From the NCBI GenBank assembly GCA_026770705.1, contig JANJGN010000007.1:96472001-96536000 (forward strand): a stretch of 64,000 bases of DNA, in the 5' to 3' direction. The notes beneath the pieces are model-generated. The model was not told where the DNA came from. It saw only the letters and a program-made list of their open reading frames with translations, and searched no databases. Below, one piece after another: positions 192 to 56,755 of the stretch (within the stretch, counting starts at the first letter, position 1; each line of letters opens with the position of its first letter). Both the position numbers and the translations under genes were made by a program. The stretch comes from Isurus oxyrinchus. Taxonomy: Eukaryota.

Positions 192-246
192 CTGTGAAGA
201 TGATCCCCAGAATAGCGAGGCACTGAGTGACAACATTCGCCAGCAT
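192..246 (-). CDS. Signal-peptide (leader) exon of paralogous IgSF receptor, MLANVVTQCLAILGIIFT(G)
   Basis: 55-nt exon from ATG to CAG|GTATCT, phase 1. Same length and phase as the + gene leader, and 20/23 nt identical across the exon end and donor (CTGGGGATCA.CT.C.CAGGTAT). Confidence 0.8.
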
Positions 247-16990: not shown

Positions 16991-17381
16991 GATATGAGTT
17001 CACAGCATTATCGTGATTGGTCCGAGAGATGTCGCTGCCCAGTGCCCGTGAGTAACTCCCTATCTGGTTTAATCAACATTTTTAAGCGGTGGTCATTGAC
17101 CATCACGTAAAGAAGTTAAACTCCAAACTTCCTATTCCCAGAGAATATTTTCTGTCACAATTAACCTGCGCACAGGGTCTCGCTGTGACCTGGATTTGAA
17201 GGAACAGTAATAACATTCTGAGCACTTCAAGGTGACGCAGAGCGCTCAGCTCCTGGCATGCAGTTTGCATAATAGAACTCATTCATTGGCTCTGCCATTT
17301 CAGGCGGATGACTTCGGTTTACAAGCTACTGCCAGAGCTGTGTGCTTCCTCGCAATAAGCGGTGACTGTGTTTCCTTCAAC

Positions 17382-17436
17382 ATGTTTGTCGCGGATGTGC
17401 TTCAACTCATATGCGTGCTGGGGATCACCTGCGCAG
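17382..17436 (+). CDS. Exon 1: signal peptide MFVADVLQLICVLGITCA(G)
   Basis: caacATG start, hydrophobic 18 aa, CAG|GTAT donor, phase 1. Confidence 0.85.
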
Positions 17437-20400
17437 GTATTTTCTATTGTTTCTTTTCCCGCTCTCACTCTCCTCTCTCACCGTCTATTATTTTCCTCGC
17501 GCATTTCAGCTTCGTGTCTTATGTATCTTTCTGTTTTCTGCTAGTTATTATTCGAGCTCAGTTCCAAGTCTCCCAAGCTCCTAAAAGTACGAGCGCCCTC
17601 GTAGGCTCAAACGTCACCGTCTATTGCACTTTCCCTATTTTTCAAGATAACTCAGAAGTGGAAGTTTATTGGTGGAAACTTGGTGAAAGTGAATTTCTGC
17701 AAATGAGCTCCGACAATAGGAACATATTTGTCCTTTTTAAACAAGGAGGAGCCTCCTTTCATCTCCTGAATATCAGTGCCCGGGATTCCGGGGTGTATTA
17801 CTGCGGAGTCAAAACGCTGGAGAGCAGCATAGTCAATGGAACGGGCTCAACAATCAAAGTATCTGGTAAGTGATACTGGGGGAGGAAAGCAAACTCACAC
17901 ATCCGATGCTTTAAAATAATTATAGCTGCTGAATATTAGCTCAAAGATATACCAGGGCAACTGTTCAACTGCGCAGAATTCACTCTCCATTAGAAATTAT
18001 GCTACATATTCTTTCCATTGAAGTTAATTTAAGGGAAAATCGGCCATGGAATATTATGGGAGTTTAAGTTCAAAATAATTACAATAAATACTTATATTTA
18101 CCTCTCGTTGTGGAAACATCCGGTTACGTGTGATCATAACGCGTCGCTCATTCTGGACACCAGTGTTAACACAAATGCGGCAGGTTGAAAATCTGTCCCC
18201 CATTTCAAAATGAACAGATTCATCATGCCTATGATATTTTTTAATAAGTGGAATGTTTGTCTAATATCCGGACTAGCCATTAGCAGCTGATTATTATTGT
18301 TTCTTTTTAAAATACCGATATTATCCTTAGTTGCGTTGCATATGATTTGTTAAAATTGTTTTTTTTTGTTTCTTTCACACATCAAGAACATGAAGCGTAA
18401 ATTTTAAAATATTTTACAGTGCGAACTGGTCGGACAAATGTATTGTGTACTCTCTAAGTACAGATTAATGTCCTTTCCATTTTATTCTGCTCCGCTGCTG
18501 CTCTGCGTTGGCACAATAAAAGGTGAAATTAAAATAATTACAATGGTGTTAATTTATTTTGTTGATTGTTTGAAACAATGTGAATTCGCGTGGTCAAACA
18601 AAAAAACTATTTGGCCCGGCACGAAATAAAAAACGAAATAATCTTCTGTTGAAGGGTCACGAGGACTCGAAATGTCAACTGTGCTCTTCTCCGCCGATGC
18701 TGCCAGACTTGCTGAGTTTTTCCAGGTATTTCTGTTTCTGTTTTTGTTTTGAATCTTTAACATACCTTCTGTTGAACACCTAAATTTAAACTATTTACCC
18801 TCTCAAAATGTACAACTGCTCCACATTGTAAAAGCTGATACTTCTCTCCCAACACCACTAATCTGTAACCAACAACAGAAAAACAGGTGAAATTGGATAG
18901 CCTGCGATCAGCTCCTGCGACAATGCACCCGTCCCGCAATCAGACACAAATGTTCACCTAAACCCACCTGAGATTGGGCTCAATAACATCTGTAGGTAAC
19001 TATTGGATTGACAGGGATAGCTATCTCCACACATGAGGGTAACGTCTGTTGTCAGTTCCCAATCTGAAAAAAAAGCGATCCGCTCTGTAGCAAAGGCTCT
19101 GACTATTTTCACAATATTTCAAAGCTATAGAAAGTATTTCTGCGGTCACGCGTTATCTCCTTATTTGACCAAGTATTTAGAGTTTCATACAGGAACGTAT
19201 TTGCTTTTTTGCAATCCAACACGTTCACTATTTTACTGCGATAATATCTGGCTATTTTATACTCGTTAGTGTTTGCTGTTTTATGCTGTGACAGATTGAC
19301 AATATGCGGCAACATATTGGAGAATTGGTACTGGAACAAATTAGTTATTCAATTCTGAAACATATTATTTTGCAATGCATCATATTCGTTACTTTGCACT
19401 GTGGAATGTTTCTTAGTTTATAATTCAACACATTCTCTACTTAACCCAGCAATGTATTTGCTATTTTACGTGCAATATATATGTTGTTTTATAAGGCATT
19501 AAATTTACTGTTGCCTTTTGAAACATGTTTGCGATTTAAAGAAACACATTTTCATGTTTATTTTGCAACAATTTAATATTTTATATGGTTAAAGTATTTA
19601 TTATATCATCCTGTAGCATTTTTACCATTTTAGACTAACATGTTGTGCAATGCCACAAACCAGTTAGTAATTCATGTTGCACCACACTTACTGTTTCATT
19701 CTGAAACATATTTATTATTTAATACTGACAGTTCATTTTATATCATATTATAATGCTGAATATATGAGATGTATACCGTAACGTAGATGGAAAGTGTTAA
19801 CAGCTGCCTTTAAAGTGTAGGATATTTAACACGTCATATAAAACATTTGCTATTAATATTGTAACAGGTTTGTTATTTCTTCAGGTTATACAGAAGGGAA
19901 GTGTATGGAAACATTGATTATGGTTTATAAAGAAACAAAATGCCGATTTTGAAAATTGTAACAGAATTGTTCCCAATCTGTCAAAATATACTAATATGAT
20001 ATACTAGTTAAATTTGAACAGTCATTTATGACAATTCATACTGATATGATTTTATGATGTGTAGTTAAAATTCTTCGAAGGTAAACTTCACATGAACAGA
20101 ATTATCTTGTTTTTATGTAATGAGTAAAATATCGCAGTGATTATTCAATCCTATTTAAGGGCCCGAATAAAGTGAAGACAATTTGTGCGCTCAGCAACAA
20201 AATAACCCAAATTCTCGATCTTACCTGATTGTTTTTTTTTTCTTCTTACAGTTCCCCCAACTCCACTGCGGATTTTTGGCAAGGTACCTGAACCAAACTC
20301 CTCTGGTCTGAATCTTGTGTGCGAAACGGATGAGTTTTACCCGGAGGCGCTCAATCTCACTTGGTGCAAAAATGGGATTGAGATTATAACCGACATAGGG

Positions 20401-21072
20401 ACGAGCAAAACGTTGAAAATAGACGGTCTGTATGAAGTTTCCAGTTTGTTGACGGAGACACAGCCCGTCCAGAGGGGAAGTGTTTATACTTGTCAAGTGT
20501 CTCACGTCACCCTCCCGGTTCCAGCTAATGTGACCGTTGTGATTTCACAAACAATCAGAGGTAACTGGGCTTTTACACTCGAGTACAGCGTCAATGGGAA
20601 GTGAATTAGTTCAGAATTAGTTATTTAATCTGGATGTATGGTCCCTCAGCAAAAAAAGTCAATCTGATACTGCCAGCCTATGTTAGTCTGATTGTTCGGT
20701 ATTTTAACCCGGTTAACGTACTGATATTGTCCAAATAACAGATGTCGTGTCATATCTACTCTCTAATGTAGCAGGACATAACATAATTTCATAAACACTT
20801 TGAACTAAACACCTTTTTAAAAGAAACTTCAAAATCTCGCTACTGCATTGTTCGAAAGCAGAACTCGGGATCCAATGGAGTAGAGTTTATATTTAGCAGC
20901 CTGGAATAAATCTCGCGTTTCAGCTCGGCCACCCGTTAATATATCAGTCCGACTTTAATTTCTATTTGTATGTTTCCTAGTTCCTTTTAATAGATCAGTT
21001 ATGGTTGTTCGGTTTGTGACGAGCATATTGGTCCTTTTGATGTTGACAATAATCGTTGTGGATTATTTTTAG
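17382..21072 (+). CDS. Non-rearranging VJ-C1 Ig-superfamily activating receptor (NKp30/NCR3-like V, C1, Arg-containing TM); join(17382..17436,17545..17865,20252..20560,20981..21072), 258 aa
   Basis: Four exons, all GT-AG phase-1 junctions, 777 nt open to TAG. Leader, V-set, C1-set and TM motifs are all present, with 7 N-glycosylation sequons (NVT, NIS, NGT, NSS, NLT, NVT, NRS). Confidence 0.88.
17545..17865 (+). CDS. Exon 2: germline-joined VJ-type Ig domain
   Basis: Acceptor ttttctgctag|. Motifs FQVSQAP, VYCTF, VYWWK, DSGVYYC and a J-like NGTGSTIKVS. Donor G|GTAAGT. 321 nt. Confidence 0.93.
18640..18752 (+). mobile_element. Penelope 3' terminal fragment with hammerhead-like motif, in intron 2
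   Basis: ctgttgaagggtcacgaggactcgaaatgtcaact...gatgctgccagacttgctgagtttttccagg matches 58890-58985. Confidence 0.75.
20252..20560 (+). CDS. Exon 3: Ig C1-set domain
   Basis: Acceptor ttttttcttcttacag|. Motifs VPPTP...LVCETDEFYPEALNLTWCKNG...DGLYEVSSLL...YTCQVSH. Donor AG|GTAACT. 309 nt. Confidence 0.93.
20981..21072 (+). CDS. Exon 4: transmembrane segment VPFNRSVMVVRFVTSILVLLMLTIIVVDYF* (exon continues to the donor after 21085)
   Basis: Acceptor tgtttcctag|. Hydrophobic run with Arg (21010-12) and Asp (21061-63). TAG at 21070-72. AAG|GTAAGA donor at 21086. Confidence 0.85.
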
Positions 21073-21534
21073 TTCGATTTGAAAGGTAAGACATTCATTT
21101 CTTACTGATGGGCGATAGTTTAAGGACAGAGCAGAGACCGAGCAGAAGCAGTAAATGACGATTAGTTATTTCTGTGATGCTCAGAGCAGCACGTCTGCTT
21201 CTCTGGACCCAAGCACATCATTCAACATTGGACTTGAGTGGGTCTTTATGGCCTGGAAATGAGCAGACTACTTCTGGCCTAAAATGGCAATGAGGATTCG
21301 AGGGGTCCCTTTTTCTATTCGGTCGCATTGCGATTAGCCCTTTCCAAAATTAATGTGGTCTGTTTGTCATCGGAATTGGGTGATATGGCCAGAGACCCCA
21401 TAATAAGGCCCTGCCCGTCAACATCTGAAAACGGAAGTGATACTTGACTTCACTTTCTACTCTGCATATGAACTCAGATAATTACTTTTTTTTACATTAA
21501 GTTACTAACTATATATATTATGCAATTGATCAAC

Positions 21535-21980
21535 ATAGAACATATAGGAGCATAGGACTTAGCAAGCTTAGGCAATTTTGGTCATTGGGGCCGGCTCCAC
21601 CATTCAGTTAGATCATGGCTGATCTGGTTGTGGTCTCAACTCCACTTTCCCGTCTGCCCCCATAACCCTCGACTCCCTTGTCTGCCAAAAATCTATCCAC
21701 CTCAGCCTTGGATAAATTGAATGATCCAGTTTCCAGTGTTTTCTGAGGAAGTGAATTCTGTAGACTATGGACCCTCTGAAAGAAAAAAAAACTAATCTCT
21801 GATTTACTCATTTATTTCTAAACGGTATCCCCTAGTTCCAGTCTATCCCACAAGAGAAAACAACTTCCCGTTATCCACCCTATCAAATCCCCTCAGGATC
21901 TTCCGTATTTCAAGGAGATCATTCTCATTCTTCTAAACTTAAGCGGGCTAAGGCCCAACCTGTGCAACCTTTCTGAATCA
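21535..21980 (-). mobile_element. CR1 LINE 3' end in the last intron
   Basis: acatagaacat tail repeat and typical CR1 3' UTR; ORF FFFQRVHSLQNSLPQK. Confidence 0.75.
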
Positions 21981-22438
21981 GATTTAAACAGCACTTTACT
22001 GGTGGTTGAAGTATGTTAATACATTGGATTCAATTTTATATTGAGTGAGCTAATCTGTTTTGCCCGGTCATGAACATGTTATTAATAGACAACCACTTAT
22101 CTAATTGTCACACAGGGGATAGATATCCTTCTAGTATTGTTTAGCATTTTAAAATATCAAACAAAGCAAACTCTATCATCTATAGTGGCTTTATGCTTCT
22201 GATCTGTCTAAACTAACATTCAGGGTATTTGATATGCCATTTTTAGTCGCTTTGTTGTCTATTTACTGTTGTAAAACTTTACATGTTAGAAATCCGAGTC
22301 TTTCCCTCACACATGAATAACTATAATGATCCCATTCAAAATTCAGACAAAATCTTTTAGCGTCCGAGATACTCTTTCAACCAGTTGTCAGGGATTTGCA
22401 TCATGAAGTTGAAATCCTGCTGGTTTCCTATTTCTCAG

Positions 22439-22503
22439 ACACCACCGGACAGAAAATTGATCGAAGAGACCCCGACATTGGAAATGCTGCGAAGATGGTT
22501 TAG
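22439..22503 (+). pseudogene. Exon 5: probable former cytoplasmic-tail exon DTTGQKIDRRDPDIGNAAKMV*, now 3' UTR because of the upstream TAG
   Basis: Acceptor tttcctatttctcag|AC, phase compatible with the 21085 donor, hydrophilic 21 aa then TAG. ATTAAA at 22594. Confidence 0.55.
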
Positions 22504-23084
22504 GAACACATCAATGCCTGGATACCGAAAGCTCCTGGCATATTGAGTGCAACCTCTACCACCCTGTATCCTGCAATGATAATACATTTGTTGATTAAAC
22601 GTGGCAGCGAATCTCTAACAATTAGTTGACAACAGACCAAATATGAAGCGAGAAAAACTGCCCTTGAAGGAAAGCGTTTGAAAATACTTTTGCAATGTTT
22701 TGCCGAGTTGAGTTCAGTTTTGGGACGGAACAAGCGGTGGCCAAAAAAATAATTATATTTGTTAAAAGGTCAGAATTGATTAAATCTGCATAACAAAAAG
22801 TTCTAAGTGATGATCAAAGAATAATCTAGATTAAAAAATAACAGTTTTAAATGACACTCATAATCCCATCATACAGCAGTGCAACAGAGTCTTGGTGGCC
22901 CAAAGTGATGGCCTGTAAAAGTAATCCAGAAATGTGAGGTTTGTCAAAGATACAAATTGTATTGGTCTGAAGTTCGTTCTACGGATGCATTAAATTTTGG
23001 GATGCCGACTGAACTGTGGGGGTTGAATTGTTCTGTTTAGACCAAAACAGCAAAACGTTAATGAAAAAAAATCAGTGAAATTGA

Positions 23085-25885
23085 GGGCACAATCGTTCCA
23101 GAAATCAGCAAAGTCCGAAATGGGACGGGGAAAGACACGTTGGACCCGCCAGCGGCAATGGCTGATTTTTTCGCCGGATCGCTGGCCTCTGATTTTCCCG
23201 CCCCACCGTCACCTCAGGCCGTCAGTAATCCGGGAGCCATATTTATAGGCTGCCCCTACAACTACTTAGAACCCTTCAAGGGATAGGAAGCTGCTGCAAA
23301 GTCATGGCTGCCAAAGGGAGGAAACATGCTGCCCCCAGATTTAGTGCCTCAGGTGACAGTTGAATGCAGTGGAGGCCCAGGTGATGTCCTCTAGACCAGC
23401 TCCAGACAAAGACCAGCAAGCAAGGTCACCATTCCAGCATGGGAGACAGTGGCTGTGGTGGTCAGCGCCCACACTCTGCAAAAGAGGACAGCCACCCAGT
23501 GCTGTAAGAGGATGAATGATCTCCTCTGTTCTGTCAGGGTAAGTCACTCTTCTCATCACTTTAAACTAGCACACTCACAAACCCATCACATATCCACAGG
23601 GATCTCACTCACTGTCAGTTCATGGGACATCATCATTCACTCTCTCACACAAACCTTCATCTGCCCGGCAGATCATGTCCTCATACCCTCCATGGTACCA
23701 CTCACCACCCACACATGTCAGGCACCCTTCTCATCTGGCCTGGCAGGCATCTTGCTTACACTCTCTCCATCTGTCTTCATGCAGGACAAGCTGGCACACA
23801 ACAACAGGGAGAGGTCAGAGACCAGTGCAGATTTTAAAAACAGAGTTATCCAGCTGGCCAGTGATAACTGGGACTGGCCATGTGCTGGCGGTGAGGTCAA
23901 CAGTGCTCTGACAAGTGAGGATCCAGCAGTGCAACATCCATCAGACAAAAATGTTGTGATTGATATTTCCTGTTCCACTGTCCCCTGCCATGCACTAATT
24001 ATCCCCCCTTGCTTTCCCAGGCACATCTGGGAAGCAGCTGAGGGGGGTCCCTAAGCCAGGTCCTCGACTCAAGCCTGGAGAAACCTTGGAAGAGAAATCT
24101 GATGACACCCTTAATTGAAAATCCAGCACGTCCTCTGTGGGCAGCCCTTGTCCCCATGGAGCCAAACCTGCATCCTGTGTGGTCCCCGGAAGATGTCAGG
24201 GATTTGAGGCCTGTTAAGGATGAATAAGGCATGGACATCTTGCACACACCTCCATGATCCATTTGTTATGGTCACAAACCAGCTGAAAAGTGAAGGAGTT
24301 TGCAGTTTGAACTGCCTTTGCAGTTCACACACTGGACTAGTTGTTGCCAGGGAGATTTAAGAGTCATGTGGGTGCAGTCGAAGGCACACTGCACCTGTGG
24401 GAATTGGGAAATCTCAGTAAATCCCAGTGCTCTTGCTTTCTGGCTTACCTGATCTCTGTCAAAGTTGACAAAGGTGTGTGCCTTGGTAAAAAGGGCACCC
24501 ATGACCTCAAATGCCCCTCATGGACCCCTGGAAGGAGCCACTGCCATGGCAATTGAGTGTAGTGGTAAATTTAACTGCCACTGGCAGTTATGAGATCCAG
24601 TGGTGCCAAATCCTGCAGAAAGTGACATATGTGCATGGCCAGTTTCCCTGCGTGCAGAGGAAGCCATGCCACCATTTGGTCTTCAGGGATTTGCTTCTAC
24701 CTTTGGCGAACCAGTTGTCTCTGTCACATTCTTCTCCTTTTTCTCCCCTGTCTATAAGCAATCAGGCAGACAGTGAGATCACCAGAATCCACGTTCCTGA
24801 TGGAGTTCCTCAATGCAGTATCAAAGAGAGAGATGCAAGGGTCAGCAATTGTCTCCTGAGGACCACTCTTAGTCATCACCTACAGCTGCCTCTCAAGGCT
24901 TTTTAACACATGCTGGAGAGTCCAAGCCACCACATGGATGCCCAGTGTTTACTGCACATGATGGCCCACCATGCCCCCACCCAGCACCACCCCACACCAC
25001 ATGACCAAGTGGCAGCAGCTTCGGCCACTCGACTGCATCCTGAACTCTCATCTCAGATACAGGCATTTTCCTAACCTGGACTCCAATGCTTCGCGCTTTG
25101 TTTGTACATAAGGGTGACTTTTCAATGTCAACTTAAACACAATGCAAGGGGCTAGGAACTCACTCCGCTACCAGTGCTCGATGACCACCTTTCCCACAAA
25201 TGCTTGACTAGGCTGGCTCCAAGCATGTCAATTGAGTTCAAGCTAAATGCTCTCAGCTGCAGTGGAATGTTAATCTTTAACATGTTTTGCCATTAGCCCG
25301 GCCATTTCCTTCCCCCACCCTCCCCACAGACTCACGTTTGTGCCTCAAAATTCGGTTGGTGCTGCCATGACCCACCCCCAAACCCCAGCACTGTTGCCTT
25401 GCCTCGAGGCTGCCTTCTCCCCCTTCTCCCCTCTGCACTGTTGCCCTTGACCCAGCACCGCAAGCCAGCCAGGGAGAAGCCGCTGCGGAGACGTACCTGT
25501 GCCCCGCCGGAATCTGTGGATCTGCTGGGATCATGTGGGGCACTGCGTAAAGTTATGTGCACTCACGTCCGAGTTCCCCTCAAAGATGAGGTTACCATGT
25601 TCACGCCTTTTAAAGGCAGTTGTAAATCACGCTGTCGTGAAATCACACCAATATGGGGTTTAAGGTTGATGTGGGGAGATGATTCCAGCATGTGGCCCAA
25701 TAATTAGATGCAAATTTATTACAATTAAGTTCAATAGCAGGAATTGCAGCCCACCATTGATGGGGGAGGGGACAATCGCGCCTTGGATTTACATTGTCGG
25801 GAAATGCGACTAGATCCTTCTCACAAGACTCTCCAATCTCACCACCGAACACTCCCGCCACGAATGGGGAAGGAAAACCCTGGCC
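23085..25885. mobile_element. PIF/Harbinger DNA transposon, decayed: Myb/SANT-like gene (+) converging on HARBI1-like transposase (-)
   Basis: + strand MAAKGRKHAAPRF and AWETVAVVVSAHTLQKRTATQCCKRMNDL (23305-23530). Minus strand ARALGFTEISQFPQVQCAFDCTH...VNCKG (24272-24502). Terminal gggcacaat...cc and ggaaaaccctggcc. Confidence 0.75.
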
Positions 25886-38312: not shown

Positions 38313-38721
38313 CCTCTCACTCTCTCTCCCCCTCTCTCCTTTCCCTTCCCACTGTGTCTCTGTCTCTCTCCCCTATCCCACTGTGTCTCTGTCTCTCTCT
38401 CTCTCCTTTCCCATCCTGCCTGTCAGTCTGTCTCTCTTCCATTTCCCACTCTCTCTCTCTCTCCTTTCCAACACCCCCCCCCACTTCTCTCTCTCTCCCT
38501 TTCCTTTCCCTTCCCACTATCTTCTCAGGCTCTCTCCTTTCCCACTCTGTCTCTCTCTGTCCTTCTCTATCCCCTTTCCCCCTCTCTCTCTCCTTTCCCA
38601 CAATCTCTCTCCCACTCTCTTTTCCCACTCTGTCTGTCTGCCACTCTCTCCCACTCTCTCTCCTTTCCCACTCTGTCTCTCATTTCCCACTCTGTCTTTG
38701 CCTGTCGCTCTCTCTCTCTCT
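38313..38721. repeat. CT-rich low-complexity / compound microsatellite
   Basis: Reiterated tctctc and ctttcccactct units. Confidence 0.9.
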
Positions 38722-39024
38722 AGAGCCTGGACCCTATCCAGACAATCTGCAGGGGCTGAGCCCCAACCTGCAGGGTGCCACGGATGGACCCTGGGGGAGG
38801 TGTGGATCTGGAGGGGTGTGGTCTACCAGTGGAGCTAAGTGAGCTGCAGATAGAGCCGGTGGGGGGGAGGGAGAGGGTGCTGGGAGTCAGGGTGGGGCAG
38901 GGCAATGCTCCCTCCCCAGTTACTCACAGCTCATCATCCAATTGGCGGTGGGTGGTTTCCTTTCCCTGCTCCTGCTTTTGGATCCGAAGCCTTACTCTCT
39001 CCTCACAGCCTGAGCCTTAGCATG

Positions 39025-40735
39025 AAAAGTGGGGCCAGAGTGCAGATGAGAAGGATGATGTAGGTATAGAAATCAGGGAGGGGGACTGTGATATACTTGA
39101 ACAAATTAGCATTGAAAGGGCGGAGGTATTAGTGGTATTAGCAGGCTTAAGAGTGGATAAATCCCCAGGCCCAGATGAAATGTATCTCAGGCTGCTATGT
39201 GAGGCAAGGGAAGAGAACGCAGGGGTCTGACACCAATTTTCAAATCCTCTCTGGCCACAGGAGAGGTGCCAGAGGACTGGAGGACAGTGAATGTGGTACC
39301 ATTATTCAAGAAGACTAGCAGGGAAAAACCAGGTAATTACAGGCCAGTGAGTCTAACATCAGAGGTAGGGAAACTTTTGGAAAAATCCTGAGGGACAGGA
39401 TTAATCTCCCTCACTTGGACAGGCAGAGATTAATCAGGGATAGTCAGCATGGCTTTGTCAGGGGTTGGGGGACAAGTCTAACAAATTTCATTGAATTTTT
39501 CGAGAAGGTGACTAGTTATGTAGATGAGGGTAATGTAGTTGATGTAGTCTACATGGACATCAGTAAAGCTTTTGACAAGTTGTTGCATGGGGAAATGGTC
39601 AAGAAGGTTAGAGCCCATGGGATACAGGGCAATTTGGCAAATTGGATCCAAAATTTGCTTAGTGGCAGGAGGCAGAGGGTGATGATCGAAGGTTGTTTTT
39701 ATGATTGGAAGCATGTGACAAGTGGTATACCGCATGGATCGGTGCTGGAACCCTTGCTGTTTATAGTGTGCATGAATGATTTAGACATGAATGTAGGAGG
39801 TATGACCAGTAAGTTCGCAGATGACATAAAAATTGGTGGTGTCATAAATAGTGAGGAGGAAAGCCTTAGAAGACAGGGCAATATAGATGGGCTGGTGACA
39901 TGGGCAGAGCAGTGGCAAATGGAATTTAATCCTGAGAAGTGTGAGGTGAAGCATTTTGGGAGGACTAACACAGCAAGGGAATACGCAATGAATGGTAGGA
40001 CCCTAGGAAATACAGAGGATCAGAGGAACCTTGGTGTACGTGTCCATAGATCCCTGAAGGCAGTAGCACAGATAGATAAAGTGGTTAAGAAGGCAAATGG
40101 GATACTTGCCTTTATTAGCTGCAGCATGGAATACAAGAGCAGGAAGATTATGTCAGAGCTATATAAAATGCTAGTTATGCCACAGCTGGAGTACTGTGTG
40201 CAGTTCTGGTTGCCACACTATAGGAAGGATGTGATTGCACTGGAGAGGGTGCAGAGGAGATTCAAAGGATGTTACCTGGGCTGGAGCGTTTCAGCTATGA
40301 AGAGAGACTGGATTGGCTAGGGCTGTTTTCCTTTGAGCAGAGAAGGCTGAGGGGGGACCTGATAGAGGTATAAAAAATTATGAGGGGCAAAGGTAGGGTA
40401 GATAGGAATAAATTTTTCCCCTTAGTGGAGGTGTCAATAACCAGGCAGCATGAATTTAAGGTAAGGGGCCAGAAGTTTGGAGCGGATTTGAGGAAACAAT
40501 TTTTTCACCCAGAGGATGATTGGAATCTGGGACTGGCTGCATGAGGGGGTGGTAGAGGCAGGAACCCTCACAACGTTAAGAAGTATTTAGATGAGCACTT
40601 GAAACGCCATTGCTTACAGGGCTACGGGCCAAGTGCTGGAGAATGGGATTAGAATAGATAGGTGTGTAATGGCTGGCATGGACATGAAGGGCTGAAGGGC
40701 CTGTTTCTGTGCTGTATAACTCTTTGATTCTATGA
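39025..40735 (+). mobile_element. CR1 LINE, 5'-truncated, with 301-aa RT ORF remnant
   Basis: SQHGFVRG...VDVVYMDISKAFDK...SGIPHGSVLEPLLF...KFADDIKIG...LEYCVQFW; CR1 3' tail at about 40700-40735. Confidence 0.92.
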
Positions 40736-42969: not shown

Positions 42970-44100
42970 GGGTAATGATGTGAACTGGTAGTCCAGAGGC
43001 TTAGGCTAATACTTTGGGGCATGGGGTCAAATCCCAACATGGCAGCTGTTGTAATTTGTATTCAGTGAAAAGAAAAATTCTAGCATAGAAAGCTAGCTAG
43101 TCTCAGTAATGGTAATGATGAAATTATCATTTGTTGTGACATGACACTAGGAAGTTCTGAGGAACAAAGGGACCTTAGCATGTGTCCATAGATTTCTGAA
43201 GGTGGAGGGGTATGTCAGTGGGGTGGTGAAAAAGGCATTTGCTGCACTTGCCTTTATCGATCGAGGCATAGATTACAAAGGTAAGGAGCTCATGTTGGAG
43301 TTGTATAGAACCTTGGTGAGGCCACAGCTGGAATAGTGTGTGCAGTTCTGGGCGCCACATTATAGGAAGGATGTGATTGCACTGGAGGGGCTGCAGAGGA
43401 GATTCACCAGGATGTTGCCTGGGATGAAACATTTAAGTTACGAAGAGAGGTTGGATAGACTTGTGTTGTTTTCGTTGGAGCAGAGAAGACGGAGGGGTGA
43501 CCTGATTGAGGTGTACAAGATAATGAGGGACATGGGCAGGGTGGATAGGGAGCAGCTGTTCCCCTTAGTTGAAGGGTCAGTCATGAGGGAACATAATTTC
43601 AAGGTGAGGGGCAGGAGGTTTAGGGGAATATGTGGAAAATCTTTTTTATCAAGAGGGTGGTGATGGTCTACGCTGTCTGGGAGGGTGGTGGAGGTGGGTT
43701 GCCTCACATCCTTTAAAAAGTACCTGGATGAGCACATGGCACGTCATCATATTCAAGGCTATGGGCCAATTGCTGATAAATGGGATTAGGTAGGTAGGTC
43801 ACGTGTTTCTCATATGTTAGTGCAGACTCGATGGGCTGAAGGGCCTCTTCTGCACTGTGTGATTCTGTGATTGTTGTAAAAACCCATCTGGTTCCTAAAT
43901 GCCCTTTAGGGAAGGAAATCTGCCATCCTTACTTGGTCTGGCCTGCACATGACTCTAGACCCACAGCAATGTTGTTGACTCTTAAATGGCCTCAGAAATG
44001 GCCTATCAAGCCACACAGTTGAAGAGCAATTAGAGATGGGCAACAAATGCTGGACTTGCCAGCGATGCCTACATCCCATGTAGGAATGAAGAAAAAAAAA
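42970..44100 (+). mobile_element. tRNA-derived SINE split by a young CR1
   Basis: Head 42970-43137 (ggggtcaaatccca), body resumes at 43871-44100 and ends in poly(A). Confidence 0.75.
43138..43870 (+). mobile_element. Young 5'-truncated CR1 with 7-bp TSD
   Basis: ttgttgt at 43131-37 and 43871-77; [15 protein letters not shown]...LIEVYKIM; gattctgtga tail. Confidence 0.85.
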
Positions 44101-47100
44101 TTCTCCTCATAAGACAATCCCACCATCCCAGGGATTAGTCTGGTGAACCACCTCATTGCATTCCCTCTTTGGCAAGTATATCCTTCCTTAGATAAGGAGA
44201 CCAACACTGCACACAATACTCAAGTTGCTGTCTCACCAAGGCTCTATACAATTGCACCAAGACATCTTTACTTCTGTACTCAAATCCCCTTGCAATGAAG
44301 GCCAACATACTGTTTGCCTTCCTTAGTGATTGTTGGACATACATGCTAGGTTTTAGTGACTCATGAACAAGGACACCCAGGTCTCTTTGGCCACCCACGC
44401 TTCCCAACCTCTCACCATTTAAGAAATACTCTGACTTGCTTTTTCAACCAAAGTGAATAACTTCACATTTATTCACATTATATTCCATCTGCTATGTTCT
44501 TGGCCATTCATTTAGCCAAACCTAGTCTGCCTAAAGCCTCCTTGCATCCTCCTCACAACTTACATCCCCATCTGGCTTTGTGTCATCAGCAAATTTGGAA
44601 ATATTGCAATTTGTCCCCACATACATTTATATAGAGTGTGAACCTAGCACTGATTCTTGCGATACCCCACTAGTGATAGCATGTCACTCTGAGAATGATC
44701 CATTTATTCTTACTCATTGCTTTCTGTCTGTTCACAAACTCTCAATCCATACTAGTATATTACTTCAATTCCAGGTGCTCTAATTTTATTTCCTAACCTC
44801 CTGTGTGGAACCTTATCAATAGCCTTCTGAAAATCCAAATACACCACATCCATTGGTTCTCCTTTATCTAAGTTAAAAGTAATATCCTCAAAAACTCCAG
44901 CATATAGGATATAAGGATAATGTGGGAAAGAGAGATAATGGATGCATTGGTGGATATCTTTCAAAATTCTACAGATTCTGGAAAGATTCCTGTGGACTGG
45001 AAGGTAGAAAACCTTCAGTGGATGATCAGCCGTGATCACACTGAATGGTGGAGCAGGCCCAATGGGCTGAATGGCCTATTCCTTCTCTTGTGTTGCTTGG
45101 TTTGTGAAACATGATTTCCCTTTCATAAATCCATGTTGACTCTGCCCAATTTTACCATTATTCTCTAAGTGTCCAGTTACCATATCCTTTGTAATAGATT
45201 TTAATATTTTCCACACAACTGGCGTCAAACTAACAGATCTGTAGTTTTCAGTTTTATCTCTCCCTCCCTTCTTTAATAGTGGGGTTACATTTTCTACCTC
45301 CCAGTCCACAGGAACCTTTCCAGAATGTATAGAATTTTGAAAGATATCCACCAATGCATCCATTATCTCTCTAGCCACTTCCTTCAACACTCTGAGATGA
45401 AGCTGATCTGATACAGGGAATTTATCAGAATTCAATCCAGTTAACTTTTCAAATACTACCTTACTTGAAGTACTTACTCAAATACTTACTAATATTAATT
45501 TCTTTCAGTTCCTCAGTTTCCCAAGTCTTTGTTTACCTAGTAGATCTGGGAGATTTTCTGTATCTTCTTCCATGAAGACAGACACAAAGGCCGGGATTTG
45601 GCAACCCAGCAAAACTCCATTGATTTTTGGCAGGAATTTCCAGTCCCAGCCACAGTAATTGTTTAGTTCCTCCACTATTTCCCTGTTCTCCATTATAGAT
45701 TCTCCTGTCTCCACATGTAATGGACCTACATTTGTCCTAGATAATATTTTCCTTTTTGCACATTGAAAGAAGTTTTTACAGTTTGCCTTTATGTTTCTCA
45801 CTAGCTTCCATTCATATTCCCTTTTTCCTTTTTTCATTAGTTTCTTGCTCAATATTCCTCCATGTTGAACAATTTGGAAGAAGCACTGAGTTTGGTTAGG
45901 ACGTAGCATCTACTTTGGTTCACGGATTTCAATGTTCATCACCAAGAGAGGCTCTATAGAAGCACTACTGATTGAGCTGACCGAGTCCTCAAGGACAGAT
46001 GTGCCAGAATGGACTTGTGGTAAGAGAACCAACAGGAGGGAAAAAAAACATCTTGACTTCATCTTCACAAATCGACCTGGTGCAAATGCATCTGTTGATG
46101 ACAGAATTGGTAGGATTTCACATAAAATTGATGAGGTCGAAGCTCTGCCGTCCTGCCACCTCCAGTCTTGAATCGTGGGGCACAACTGGCAGGAGGAGAA
46201 GGCTACACAAATATACCCATCCTCAGTGATGGGGATGTAAAGCACATTGGTGCAAAAGGCAAAGCTGAAGTATTTAGAACCATTTTCAGACAGAGTGCCA
46301 AATGATCCATCTCAGCTGCTTCTGGAGGTCCTCAGCATCATGGGTGCTAATCATCAGCCAGTTTGATTTATTCCACATGATATCAAGAAATGATTGAAGG
46401 CACTGGATACTGCAAAGGCTATGGGCCCTGACAACATTCTGACAATAGTACTGAAGGCTTGTGCTCCAGAACATGCTGCGCCCCTAACCAAGCTGTTCCA
46501 GTACAGTTAGAACACTGGCATCTACCTGACAATGCGGAAGATTGCCCTGGTATGTCCTGTCCACAAAATGCAGGACAATTCCAACTTGGTCAATTACTGC
46601 TAGATTAGTCTACTCCGATCATCAGCAAAATGATTGAAGGGTTCGTCAACAGTGCTATCAAACAGCACTCAGCAATAATCTGCTCAGCTCTTGACCTCAT
46701 TACTTTGTCCAAACATGGCCAGATGAGCATAACTCAAGAGGTGAGGTGAGAGTGACTGCCCCAGATATCAAAGCTCCATTTGACGTACTGCGGCATCAGA
46801 GAGTCCTAGCAAAATTGGAGTCAATGGGAAAACTCTTCACTAGTTTGAGTGATACCTAGTACAAGAGAAGATGGTTGTGGTTGCTGGAGGTCAATCATCT
46901 CAGTCCCAGGATATCACTGCAGAAGTTCCTCAGGGTAGTGTTCTCAGCCCAACCATCTTCAGCTGTTTCATCAATGACTTTCCTTCCATCATCAGGTTAA
47001 AAGTGGGGATATTTGCTGATGATTGCCCAATGTTCAGTGCCATTCATAATTGCTCAGATATTGAAGCACCACGTGTCCGTATGCAGCAAGACCTGGACAG

Positions 47101-54494: not shown

Positions 54495-56755
54495 GAATCA
54501 CAGAATCAGAGAATCACAGAATCACACAGTGCAGAAAAGGCTCTTTGGCCCATTGAGTCTGCATTGACATGTGAGAAACACCTGACCTACCTACCTAATC
54601 CTATTTACCAGCACTTGGCCCATAGCCTTGAATGTTATGACGTGCCAATTGCTCATCCAGGTACTTTTTAAAGGATGTGAGGCAACCCACCTCCACCACC
54701 CTCCCAGGTAGGGCATTCCAGACTGTCATCACCCTCTGGGTAAAAAGGTTTTCTTCACATTCCCCCCTAAACCTCCTGCCCCTCGCCTTGAAATTTTGTT
54801 CCCTCACGACTTACCCTTCAACTAAGGGGAACATCTGCTCCCTATCCACCCTGTCCATGTCCCTCATAATCATGTACAGCTCAATCAGGTCGCCCCTCAC
54901 TCTTCTCTGCTCCAACGAAAACAAGCCAAGCCTATCCAACCTCTCTTCGTAACTTAAATGTTTCATTCCAGGCAACATCCTGGTGAATCTCATCTGCACC
55001 CTCTCCAGTGCAATCACATCCTTCCTGTAATGTGGCGTCCAAAACTGCACACAGTACTGCAGCATGGGTCCTCACCAAGGTTCGATAGAACTCCAACATG
55101 ACCTCCCTACTTTTGTGATCTATGCCTCGATTGATAAAGGTAAGAGTCCAAAATGCCTTTTTCACCACCCACTAACATGCCCCTCCACCTTCAGAGATAT
55201 GGATACACACACCAAGGTCCCTTTGTTCCTCAGAACGTCCTAGTGTCATGTCACTCATTGTAATACTTCCTTATCAAATTACTCCTTCAAAAGTGTATCA
55301 CCTCACACTTTTCAGGGTTAAATGCTATCTGCCACTTATCTGCCCATTTGACCATCCCGTCTATATCTTCCTGTAGCCCAAGACACTCAACCTCACTGTT
55401 AGCCACCTGGTCAATCCTTGTGTCATCTGCAAATTTACAAATCCAACCCCCAACATAGTCATCTATGTCGTTTATATAAATGATGAATAACAGCGGACCC
55501 AGCACAGTTCTCTGTGGTACGTCACTGGGCACGGGCTTCCAGTCACTAAAGCAGCCTTCTGTCATCACCCTCTGTCTCCTACAACTAAGCCAATTTTGAA
55601 TCCACCTTACAAATTACCTCATATCCCATGTGCATTTGCCTTCTTTATAAGTTTCCCATGTGCGACCTTGTCAAAGGCTTTGCTGAAATCCATATAAACT
55701 ACATCAACTATACTACCCTTATCTACACAACTGGTCACCTCCTCAAAAAATTCAATCAAATTTGTTAGGTATGACCTCCCTCTGACAAAGCCACGTTGAC
55801 TATCCCTGATTAAACCTTGCCTCTCCAAGGGAGAAAGAAACTCTCCTTCAGAATTTTCTCCAATAGTCTCCCTACCACTTGCATGAGACTCACTGACCTG
55901 TAGCTCCCTGGCTTATCTCTGCAACCCTTCATAAATAGCAGAACCACATTAGCTGTTCTCCAGTCCTCTGGCACCTCCCTCCAGAGGACTTAAAAATTTG
56001 GGTCAGAGTGCCTGTGATCTCCTCCCTTGCCTGCCTCAGCAGTCTGGGACACAAATCATCTGGACCTGGAGATTTGTCCACTTTTAAGCCTGCCAACACC
56101 TCCAATACCTTGTCACTCCCTATATCAATTTGCTCAGGAACCTCGCAGTCCCTCTCCCTGAGTTCCATGCCTTCATCCTCATTCTCTTGGGTGAAGATGG
56201 ATGTGAAGCATTCTTTCAACCCTTTCTACCGATGTCATCTGGCTCCATCCATAGATTGCCTCCTTGGTCCCTAATGGGCCGTACTCTTTCCCTGGTTATG
56301 CTCTTCCCATTGATATACTTATAGAACATCTTGGGATTTTCCATACTTTTACCAGCCAGAACTTTCTCATATCCCCTCTTTGCTCTCCTAATTGCTTTCT
56401 TAAGCTTCACCCTGCACTTGCTGTACTCCACTATTGCCTCTGCTGATTTGGTCCCCTTGTACCTGCTAGAAGCCTCTCTTTTCCGTCTCATCGTATCCTG
56501 AATATCTCTGGTCATCCATGGTTCTCTGGGCTTCTTACTCCTTCCTATCACCCTAGAGGGAATATGTTGAGCCTGTACCCTTCCCATTTCATTTTTGAAC
56601 ACCTCCCCCCACAACTGCACTTCTGTAGATTTCTCCACAAGTAGTTGTTCCCAGTCTACCTTGGCCAGATTCTGCCTTATTTTACTAAAATCTGCTCTCC
56701 CCAAGCCAAAACATTTTTTTCCAACTTGTCTATTCTTTTGTCCATAACAAACTTA
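54495..56755 (-). mobile_element. Young CR1 LINE (about 2.3 kb, part of ORF2)
   Basis: (aatcacag)n tail at 54496-54526; RADFSKIR, KSPGPDDLCPRLL, SQRGFVRGRS, KFADDTR. Same subfamily as 43138-43870. Confidence 0.9.

Follow-up and report, generated by a model that had tools for sequence, protein, structure and literature searches.

The window analysed here is the whole stretch of 64,000 nucleotides (64 kb) at positions 96,472,001 to 96,536,000 of contig JANJGN010000007.1 of the Isurus oxyrinchus assembly GCA_026770705.1 (forward strand). It contains a gene for a membrane receptor with one variable (V) domain, one C1-set constant-type domain and a transmembrane (TM) segment. The preliminary description of this DNA had placed four phase-1 exons here (leader, V, C1 and TM), and all four were confirmed on the plus strand at the same coordinates (Table 1). 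The exons are all open with no internal disruption, every junction is in phase 1, and canonical GT/AG splice sites are present throughout. The parts total 258 residues (18+1+106+1+102+1+29). The leader is closely similar to the leader of the horn-shark protein P0014, and the C1 exon acceptor is preceded by a 20-nt pyrimidine tract. The split leader is the canonical layout for antigen-receptor V genes (PMC12227049).

Pfam was run on each exon singly. The V exon matched the Pfam V-set (4.5e-9, 36.9 bits against a cut-off of 26), and the C1 exon matched the C1-set (5.6e-13, 49.5 bits against a cut-off of 21). The Cys pairs and core Trp residues of V and C1 have all been retained. In the C strand of C1 (region 20317-20325) the gene has W-C-K, where the alignment A1 of nine family proteins has an invariant Tyr (W-Y-K). 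This change gives C1 a third, unpaired Cys, and the same change was observed in the ray members P0031 and P0034. Together, the leader, V, C1 and TM exons make up an apparently intact four-exon receptor gene.

Table 1. Positions, in the window, of the exons and other features of the gene and of its upstream neighbour (a slash marks the exon border).
Feature	Position	Strand	Description
Leader exon	17382..17436	+	ATG; 55 nt; 18 codons + 1 nt; phase-1 donor CAG/gtattt
Leader intron	17437..17544	+	108 bp; split-leader layout, last leader residues encoded by the V exon
V(J) exon	17545..17865	+	321 nt; codons 17547-17864; acceptor ...ctgctag/; donor CTG/gtaagt
J-like G strand NGTGSTIKV	17835..17861	+	within the V exon, 3' of YYC (17796-17804)
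C1-set exon	20252..20560	+	309 nt; codons 20254-20559; donor GAG/gtaact
Stalk/TM exon, predicted activating type	20981..21072	+	92 nt; terminates in TAG
Post-stop frame FDLKG into donor AAG/gtaaga	21073..21092	+	stranded exon end or splice site in the 3' untranslated region
Leader exon of head-to-head family paralogue	192..246	-	found by phase-1 leader scan; 18 hydrophobic codons; donor CAG/gtatct

The V exon carries a J-like G strand of its own, in which N-G-T doubles as a glycosylation sequon. A1 shows no variation at the N, G, G and V of this motif, and across the family the invariant Asn of N-G-T stands at the position of the J-motif Phe/Trp. An exact scan of the whole window for CACAGTG/CACTGTG heptamers found none in or adjoining the V exon; 16 heptamers were counted over the 64 kb, where chance alone would give 10.8. 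The sole intragenic heptamer (19397-19403) is midway along the V-C1 intron and has neither a nonamer nor a coding J alongside. Because the J strand belongs to the germline V exon, no rearrangement is involved. The earlier claims of a V exon that includes its G strand and contains no heptamer, and of a non-rearranging VJ + C1 + TM gene of a cartilaginous fish, are upheld. No Cys was found between C1 and the C terminus of the protein, so there is no membrane-proximal interchain Cys. In immunoglobulin (Ig) and T-cell receptor (TCR) chains the J-motif Phe/Trp packs in V-V dimers. With the Phe/Trp replaced by an Asn within a sequon and no Cys after C1, the V domain probably acts unpaired.

In the TM exon, the Arg codon (21010-21012) and the Asp codon (21061-21063) are 17 residues apart, and the TAG occupies 21070-21072. 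The TM segment aligned with the Arg-type family members P0004, P0005, P0014, P0020, P0024, P0028, P0063, P0116 and P0157. At the place where the frame continues behind the stop, P0028 has ..KVKG and then a further tail, the ..KVKG standing ahead of its last exon. Truncation at the TAG leaves no tail at all; basic anchor residues are lost with it, but none of the known signalling motifs. As no AATAAA occurs in the 3 kb behind the stop, splicing of the transcript to a 3' exon farther downstream probably persists. A three-frame translation of 20540-23100 contained no recognisable tail with an immunoreceptor tyrosine-based inhibitory motif (ITIM) or switch motif (ITSM). By tblastn with the four exons and the nine family proteins, neither an ITIM-type TM or tail exon downstream nor a second V or C1 exon was detected in the window (the best of the weak, chance-level C1 matches had an E value of 0.032). 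A weak match at 23283-23339 was dismissed, as no hydrophobic stretch stands before it.

Sequencing runs were inspected for transcripts and for variation at the locus. The status of run X10 as RNA is a guess. It gave a 216-nt contig of about 99% identity on 17543-17745, whose match ends at the V-exon acceptor and which continues with 13 further letters not fitting the leader intron. Intron depth in X10 was nil apart from the repeat at 18644-18750 and one bin. The contig fits a spliced leader-V transcript, as thin evidence. A joint in X10 from 18725 to 19443 was dismissed as a splice because one side has only 24 letters and it starts in a genome-wide repeat. That repeat, the V-C1 intron element at 18644-18750, is SINE-like (short interspersed nuclear element) and occurs genome-wide, with a summed depth of 10^4 to 10^6 in every run, both DNA and putative RNA.

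Five DNA runs hold the locus (17300-21200), each with only 0.54 of its 31-letter words. This share corresponds to the differences seen in run X2, which departs from the assembly by about 1.5-2%, in exons and introns alike. The differences listed for X2 include L9P and I15L in the leader and replacements at codons 88 and 90 in the CDR3-like loop (complementarity-determining region 3) of V, against two silent changes. Among these listed differences, none puts a stop into the leader or into the V exon. Run X2 represents a divergent haplotype or population.

The leader exon of a family paralogue, facing the gene head to head, lies 17.1 kb upstream, and the remainder of the paralogue gene is outside the window. 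This leader confirms that the gene sits in a cluster. Outside the gene, the window is mostly transposon and retroelement debris. Fragments of reverse-transcriptase open reading frames (ORFs) of the long interspersed nuclear element (LINE) type were found on both strands at 39415-40320, 43340-43663, 45076-45435, 55287-55568 and 56216-56704. A low-complexity region at 38317-38842 is open on both strands, as long ORFs of Ser/Leu/Pro or of Glu/Arg/Gly.

A receptor family of cartilaginous fishes

Relatives were sought with the open frame 17232-17870, of which the V part alone was scored. The closest hits were shark proteins of 336-338 aa with 76-81% V identity, while the others showed 42-49%; all of them combine a V-set with a C1-set domain. 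The profile made from the nine-protein alignment A1 retrieved at least 64 family proteins below an E value of 1e-46. They are spread over about 20 chondrichthyan species (sharks, rays and the chimaera Callorhinchus), and within a species one contig usually carries many of them. An exhaustive HMMER search with the V exon against 1.84 billion representatives gave 323 matches at or below 1e-3, of which 91 were at or below 1e-10. The source was looked up for ten V-only or V-C1 matches by local family hidden Markov models and name look-ups, and all ten were chondrichthyan. The ESM Atlas returned generic V-set clusters only. As judged from these searches, the gene is one member of a large multigene family that appears to be confined to sharks, rays and chimaeras. 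The singular relic envisaged in the preliminary description is thus not what was found, as the gene belongs to a multigene family of sharks, rays and a chimaera that is already in public annotations.

The NCBI names of the members are heterogeneous. The most frequent is 'tyrosine-protein phosphatase non-receptor type substrate 1-like' (SIRP-alpha-like), about ten members are named 'NCR3 ligand 1-like', and 'tapasin-related protein-like', 'Ig lambda-1 light chain-like', 'CD276 homolog' and 'class II beta chain-like' also occur. This inconsistent naming shows that the family has been annotated automatically and not curated. No description of the family was found in the literature that could be searched. 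Both observations agree with the earlier statement that the family is poorly described.

The family motifs WWKLG, GVYYCG and NG.G....V are invariant in A1, and all of them are present in the V exon of the window. Members have a single C1 directly after V with FYP...W.K and Y.C.VSH, which the gene also shows, with Cys in place of the Tyr of W-Y-K. Identity to the members ranged from 81 to 30% in V and from 72 to 40% in C1. The V domain is 81% identical to both the sevengill P0001 and the horn-shark P0014, and C1 is 72% and 69% identical, respectively. P0014 is the closest full counterpart, since it agrees in leader, V, C1 and TM type; its annotated protein has a spurious N-terminal extension. 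P0014 is itself uncharacterised, and no one-to-one orthology to a characterised gene was observed. In maximum-likelihood trees, the gene, P0014, P0001, the cloudy-catshark P0002 and the smooth-hound P0003 formed a five-member clade, with support in the Shimodaira-Hasegawa-like approximate likelihood ratio test (SH-aLRT) of 99 for V and 94 for C1.

Two types of 3' end were observed in the family. The first has a plain TM followed by a tail of 80-190 residues with an ITIM (L/V-x-Y-A-x-L) and an ITSM (T-E-Y-A-x-L/I). In the second, an Arg in the outer third of the TM stands 17 residues before Asp/Glu-His/Tyr, and the tail has 3-20 residues without motifs. ITIM/ITSM tails were present in 30-odd members and the Arg-type TM in about ten members of different V clades. 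Within the five-member clade the window gene and P0014 are of the Arg type, and P0001, P0002 and P0003 are of the ITIM type. An ectodomain of about 80% identity with opposite signalling ends is the hallmark of paired receptors.

Isoforms or variants with V but without C1 were also found in catshark, horn shark, rays and chimaera (P0079, P0080, P0088, P0089, P0090, P0143, P0158 and P0214). Those V-only proteins whose scores reach family level are 'isoform X2/X4' products of the same chromosomes. These V-only forms resemble NKp30, and the C. milii protein P0214 is labelled 'NCR3-like' by NCBI.

Outside the cartilaginous fishes, the protein nearest to A1 was the SIRP-like P0064 of lungfish, with a V-V-C1-C1 structure (2.8e-36). 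With the V exon, the best non-chondrichthyan matches were turtle and squamate proteins with 3-6 tandem V domains and about 28% identity per domain (P0073, P0075, P0076, P0083, P0125 and P0173). Their names, such as pIgR-like, titin-like and NCAM2, are uninformative, and they may represent an unexplored reptile receptor family.

Signalling type and alternative explanations

Judged from its sequence, the gene is probably, at somewhat better than even confidence, an activating-type member of its orthogroup, encoding a type-I membrane glycoprotein of a chondrichthyan-specific V(J)-C1-TM receptor family that forms a SIRP-like paired system. This interpretation differs from that of the preliminary description. 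Without pairing, the single V domain would bind a ligand of cell-surface or pathogen origin, and the C1 domain would act as a spacer. In NKp30, NKp46, Fc-alpha-RI and SIRP-beta, a basic TM residue recruits an adaptor with an immunoreceptor tyrosine-based activation motif (ITAM). With its short-tailed Arg-type TM, the protein most likely couples to an ITAM adaptor for signalling, in the manner of SIRP-beta and NKp30. The TM Arg would recruit an adaptor with an acidic TM residue (FcR-gamma, CD3-zeta or DAP12 type), giving cell activation. Relatives with near-identical ectodomains would recruit SHP-type phosphatases through their ITIM/ITSM and give inhibition. Such a paired activating/inhibitory system would resemble SIRP-alpha/SIRP-beta or the activating and inhibitory NKp30-type receptors.

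Several observations weigh against this interpretation. The TAG follows directly after ..DYF, where the nine relatives have Lys or Leu and then 3-20 more residues. Loss of this basic stop-transfer residue may impair membrane anchoring and could be a first step of decay. The terminal C1 branch of the gene is long (0.26 against a median of 0.12). No read or contig on the C1 or TM exon was found in the putative RNA runs. The leader of the upstream neighbour resembles P0027/P0046 of another subfamily and not the clade of the gene. By this resemblance the neighbour is not the inhibitory twin, and a twin with the same V in this genome is hypothetical.

A young pseudogene, i.e., a decaying copy of the activating type that lost its cytoplasmic anchor by a nonsense codon after the TM, is unlikely, though it is the likeliest of the alternatives. 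The position of the TAG is in its favour, together with the open frame and the good donor that persist behind it, and so are the long C1 branch, the lack of contigs over the C1 and TM exons in the putative RNA runs and the retroelement debris that fills the rest of the window. However, four open exons with canonical splice sites, both Cys pairs and the core Trp residues have been kept, and the second haplotype, X2, shows no leader or V stop among the differences listed. As the tails of the activating relatives are free of motifs and have 3 to about 20 residues, loss of the tail would cost little in signalling.

The remaining alternatives concern the kind of protein. It is distinctly improbable that the gene belongs to the shark NCR3 (NKp30) family, in the usage of Kinlein et al. 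2021, as an NKp30 with an extra C1, although the VJ-type V exon and the TM Arg are those of NKp30, and the C1-skipped isoforms and the 'NCR3-like' label of P0214 point the same way. Neither with the V exon nor with the V-only profile A2 did NKp30 rank within the top 60 solved chains, and V was not measurably nearer to NKp30 than to other V domains, so that the NKp30-like V proposed earlier finds no specific support; the top single-V-domain matches were TCR-alpha V, PD-L1 V, CD79b and V-NAR (about 1e-10). In the white shark the curated NCR3 genes belong to the major histocompatibility complex (MHC) region of chr19 (101.9-102.3 Mb, beside AIF1/PRRC2A), a chromosome whose gene list runs to 115.6 Mb, and the MHC of the catshark maps to chr37. 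The contigs that carry the family members measure 193.5 Mb in the white shark and 198.8 Mb in the catshark. By this indirect comparison the family is off the MHC chromosome in both species, and the MHC linkage that the preliminary description had raised fails where it can be judged. The usual NCBI names of the family (NCR3 ligand 1-like, Ig lambda-1 light chain-like, tapasin-related and substrate 1-like) were likewise absent from the stored parts of the gene lists of the MHC chromosomes. We consider it very improbable that the protein is a B7-H6 or B7-type ligand and not a receptor. When the ectodomain model of P0001 was compared with solved structures, the top match was B7-H6 (4zso_E; Z 15.7 over 187 residues, 26% identity, root-mean-square deviation 4.5), and about ten members carry the name of an NCR3 ligand. 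Against this, Rst, ICOS-L and HLA class II chains came within 1 Z unit of B7-H6, and the model was made from 9 sequences with low confidence (predicted local distance difference test, pLDDT, 63; predicted template modelling score, pTM, 0.47), its relative domain orientation being unreliable; the fold search would mainly reflect the V + C1 pair. The G-x-G J bulge is invariant in the family and, to our knowledge, absent from V domains of the B7 family, and the alternative charged-TM and ITIM/ITSM ends are a signature of paired receptors. Germline-joined genes are common among shark Ig clusters, yet it is hardly credible that this gene arose by germline joining from a rearranging Ig light-chain or TCR gene. 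A lambda light chain was the best solved match to A1, aligned end to end over V plus C, and several members are named after this chain. On the other hand, remnants of a recombination signal sequence (RSS) are missing, a TM Arg exon or an ITIM tail takes the place of a secreted C terminus, and in the V tree, with Ig kappa and two further outgroups at the root, Ig kappa did not fall within the family. The family extends to chimaera, and every member examined has the J-like strand within its V domain. The absence of a membrane-proximal interchain Cys and the invariant N-G-T at the J Phe/Trp position also contradict the earlier proposal of a protein built like a TCR or IgL chain.

Comparison with known receptor systems

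Models for the origin of antigen receptors assume a non-rearranging VJ-C1 precursor (PMC10751288, PMC12227049, PMC2785349). The shark evidence for such a precursor has so far consisted of UrIg, UrIg2 and NCR3. To these the family adds a large set of membrane receptors whose layout is exactly V(J)-C1. Its members span the three chondrichthyan lineages, lie off the MHC and have paired activating and inhibitory ends, and their inclusion in trees could change the lineage that appears closest to Ig and TCR. It is also a candidate paired receptor system of natural killer (NK) or myeloid type for cartilaginous fishes, in which little is known of such systems. The gain from this single gene is modest: the family grows by one member, to which the horn shark has a close counterpart, and expression is barely documented. 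A more far-reaching interpretation, which we regard as quite unlikely, is that the family would be a direct non-MHC survivor of the VJ-C1 type ancestral to the rearranging receptors (the SIRPs perhaps separately). It would then be a third non-rearranging lineage beside UrIg/UrIg2 and NCR3, with inhibitory and activating forms switched by exchange of the 3' TM/tail exon within one orthogroup.

UrIg and UrIg2 of elasmobranchs have a single-exon VJ, a split leader and C1-type domains without rearrangement. UrIg lies in the MHC and UrIg2 beside the IgH/TCR-alpha-delta complex, and both have several C domains, nine in the nurse-shark UrIg2 (PMC12227049). The gene resembles them in its VJ exon with split leader, its C1 domain, its elasmobranch origin and its lack of rearrangement, and UrIg2 (9dmx) matched A1 at 1.2e-24. 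However, UrIg and UrIg2 are single-copy genes with several C domains, whereas here a single C1 is found in a multigene cluster elsewhere. The N-terminal domains of UrIg2 form disulfide-linked homodimers. The present family has ITIM or charged-TM signalling ends.

Compared with Ig and TCR chains, the family lacks an RSS remnant and an interchain Cys and has Asn in place of the Phe/Trp of FGXG. It shares with NKp30 a germline VJ exon and, in its activating members, a TM Arg with a very short tail; NKp30 is a single VJ domain without a C domain, whereas the window gene has an intact C1 exon. With B7-H6 (NCR3LG1) the likeness is the two-domain ectodomain of V + C1-like type, and the differences from B7 are the invariant J-like G-x-G strand and the paired charged-TM and ITIM ends.

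In the SIRPs an N-terminal V precedes a linear array of true C1-set domains (PMC2785349). As in the present family, a non-rearranging V is followed by C1, and ITIM-tailed members are paired with short-tailed members that have a basic TM residue. Apart from Ig chains, the top 60 solved matches of the C1 exon contained SIRP-alpha (2wng, 8.1e-14) and SIRP-gamma (4i2x, 5.2e-13) and nothing else; with the V exon and with A2, no SIRP entered the top 60. Against solved chains, A1 gave 2.8e-25 for SIRP-alpha, with Ig chains, SIRP-alpha and UrIg2 all between 1e-24 and 1e-26. The lungfish SIRP scored 143 bits with A1 as a 2V+2C1 protein against 64 bits for Ig kappa (V+C1), which is no better per V-C1 unit. 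The window contains no anchor genes for a comparison with the SIRP locus. The SIRPs also differ in detail, as they have two C1 domains (V-C1-C1) against one in the window gene, and a central Lys couples SIRP-beta to DAP12 where this family has an Arg in the outer third of the TM and a distal Asp/Glu. The SIRP-alpha tail has four tyrosines, and the family tail has an ITIM and an ITSM. Although a claim of orthology or membership would go beyond the data, SIRP appears, as far as sequence and domain order can tell, to be the closest functional and architectural analogue of the V(J)-C1-TM family.

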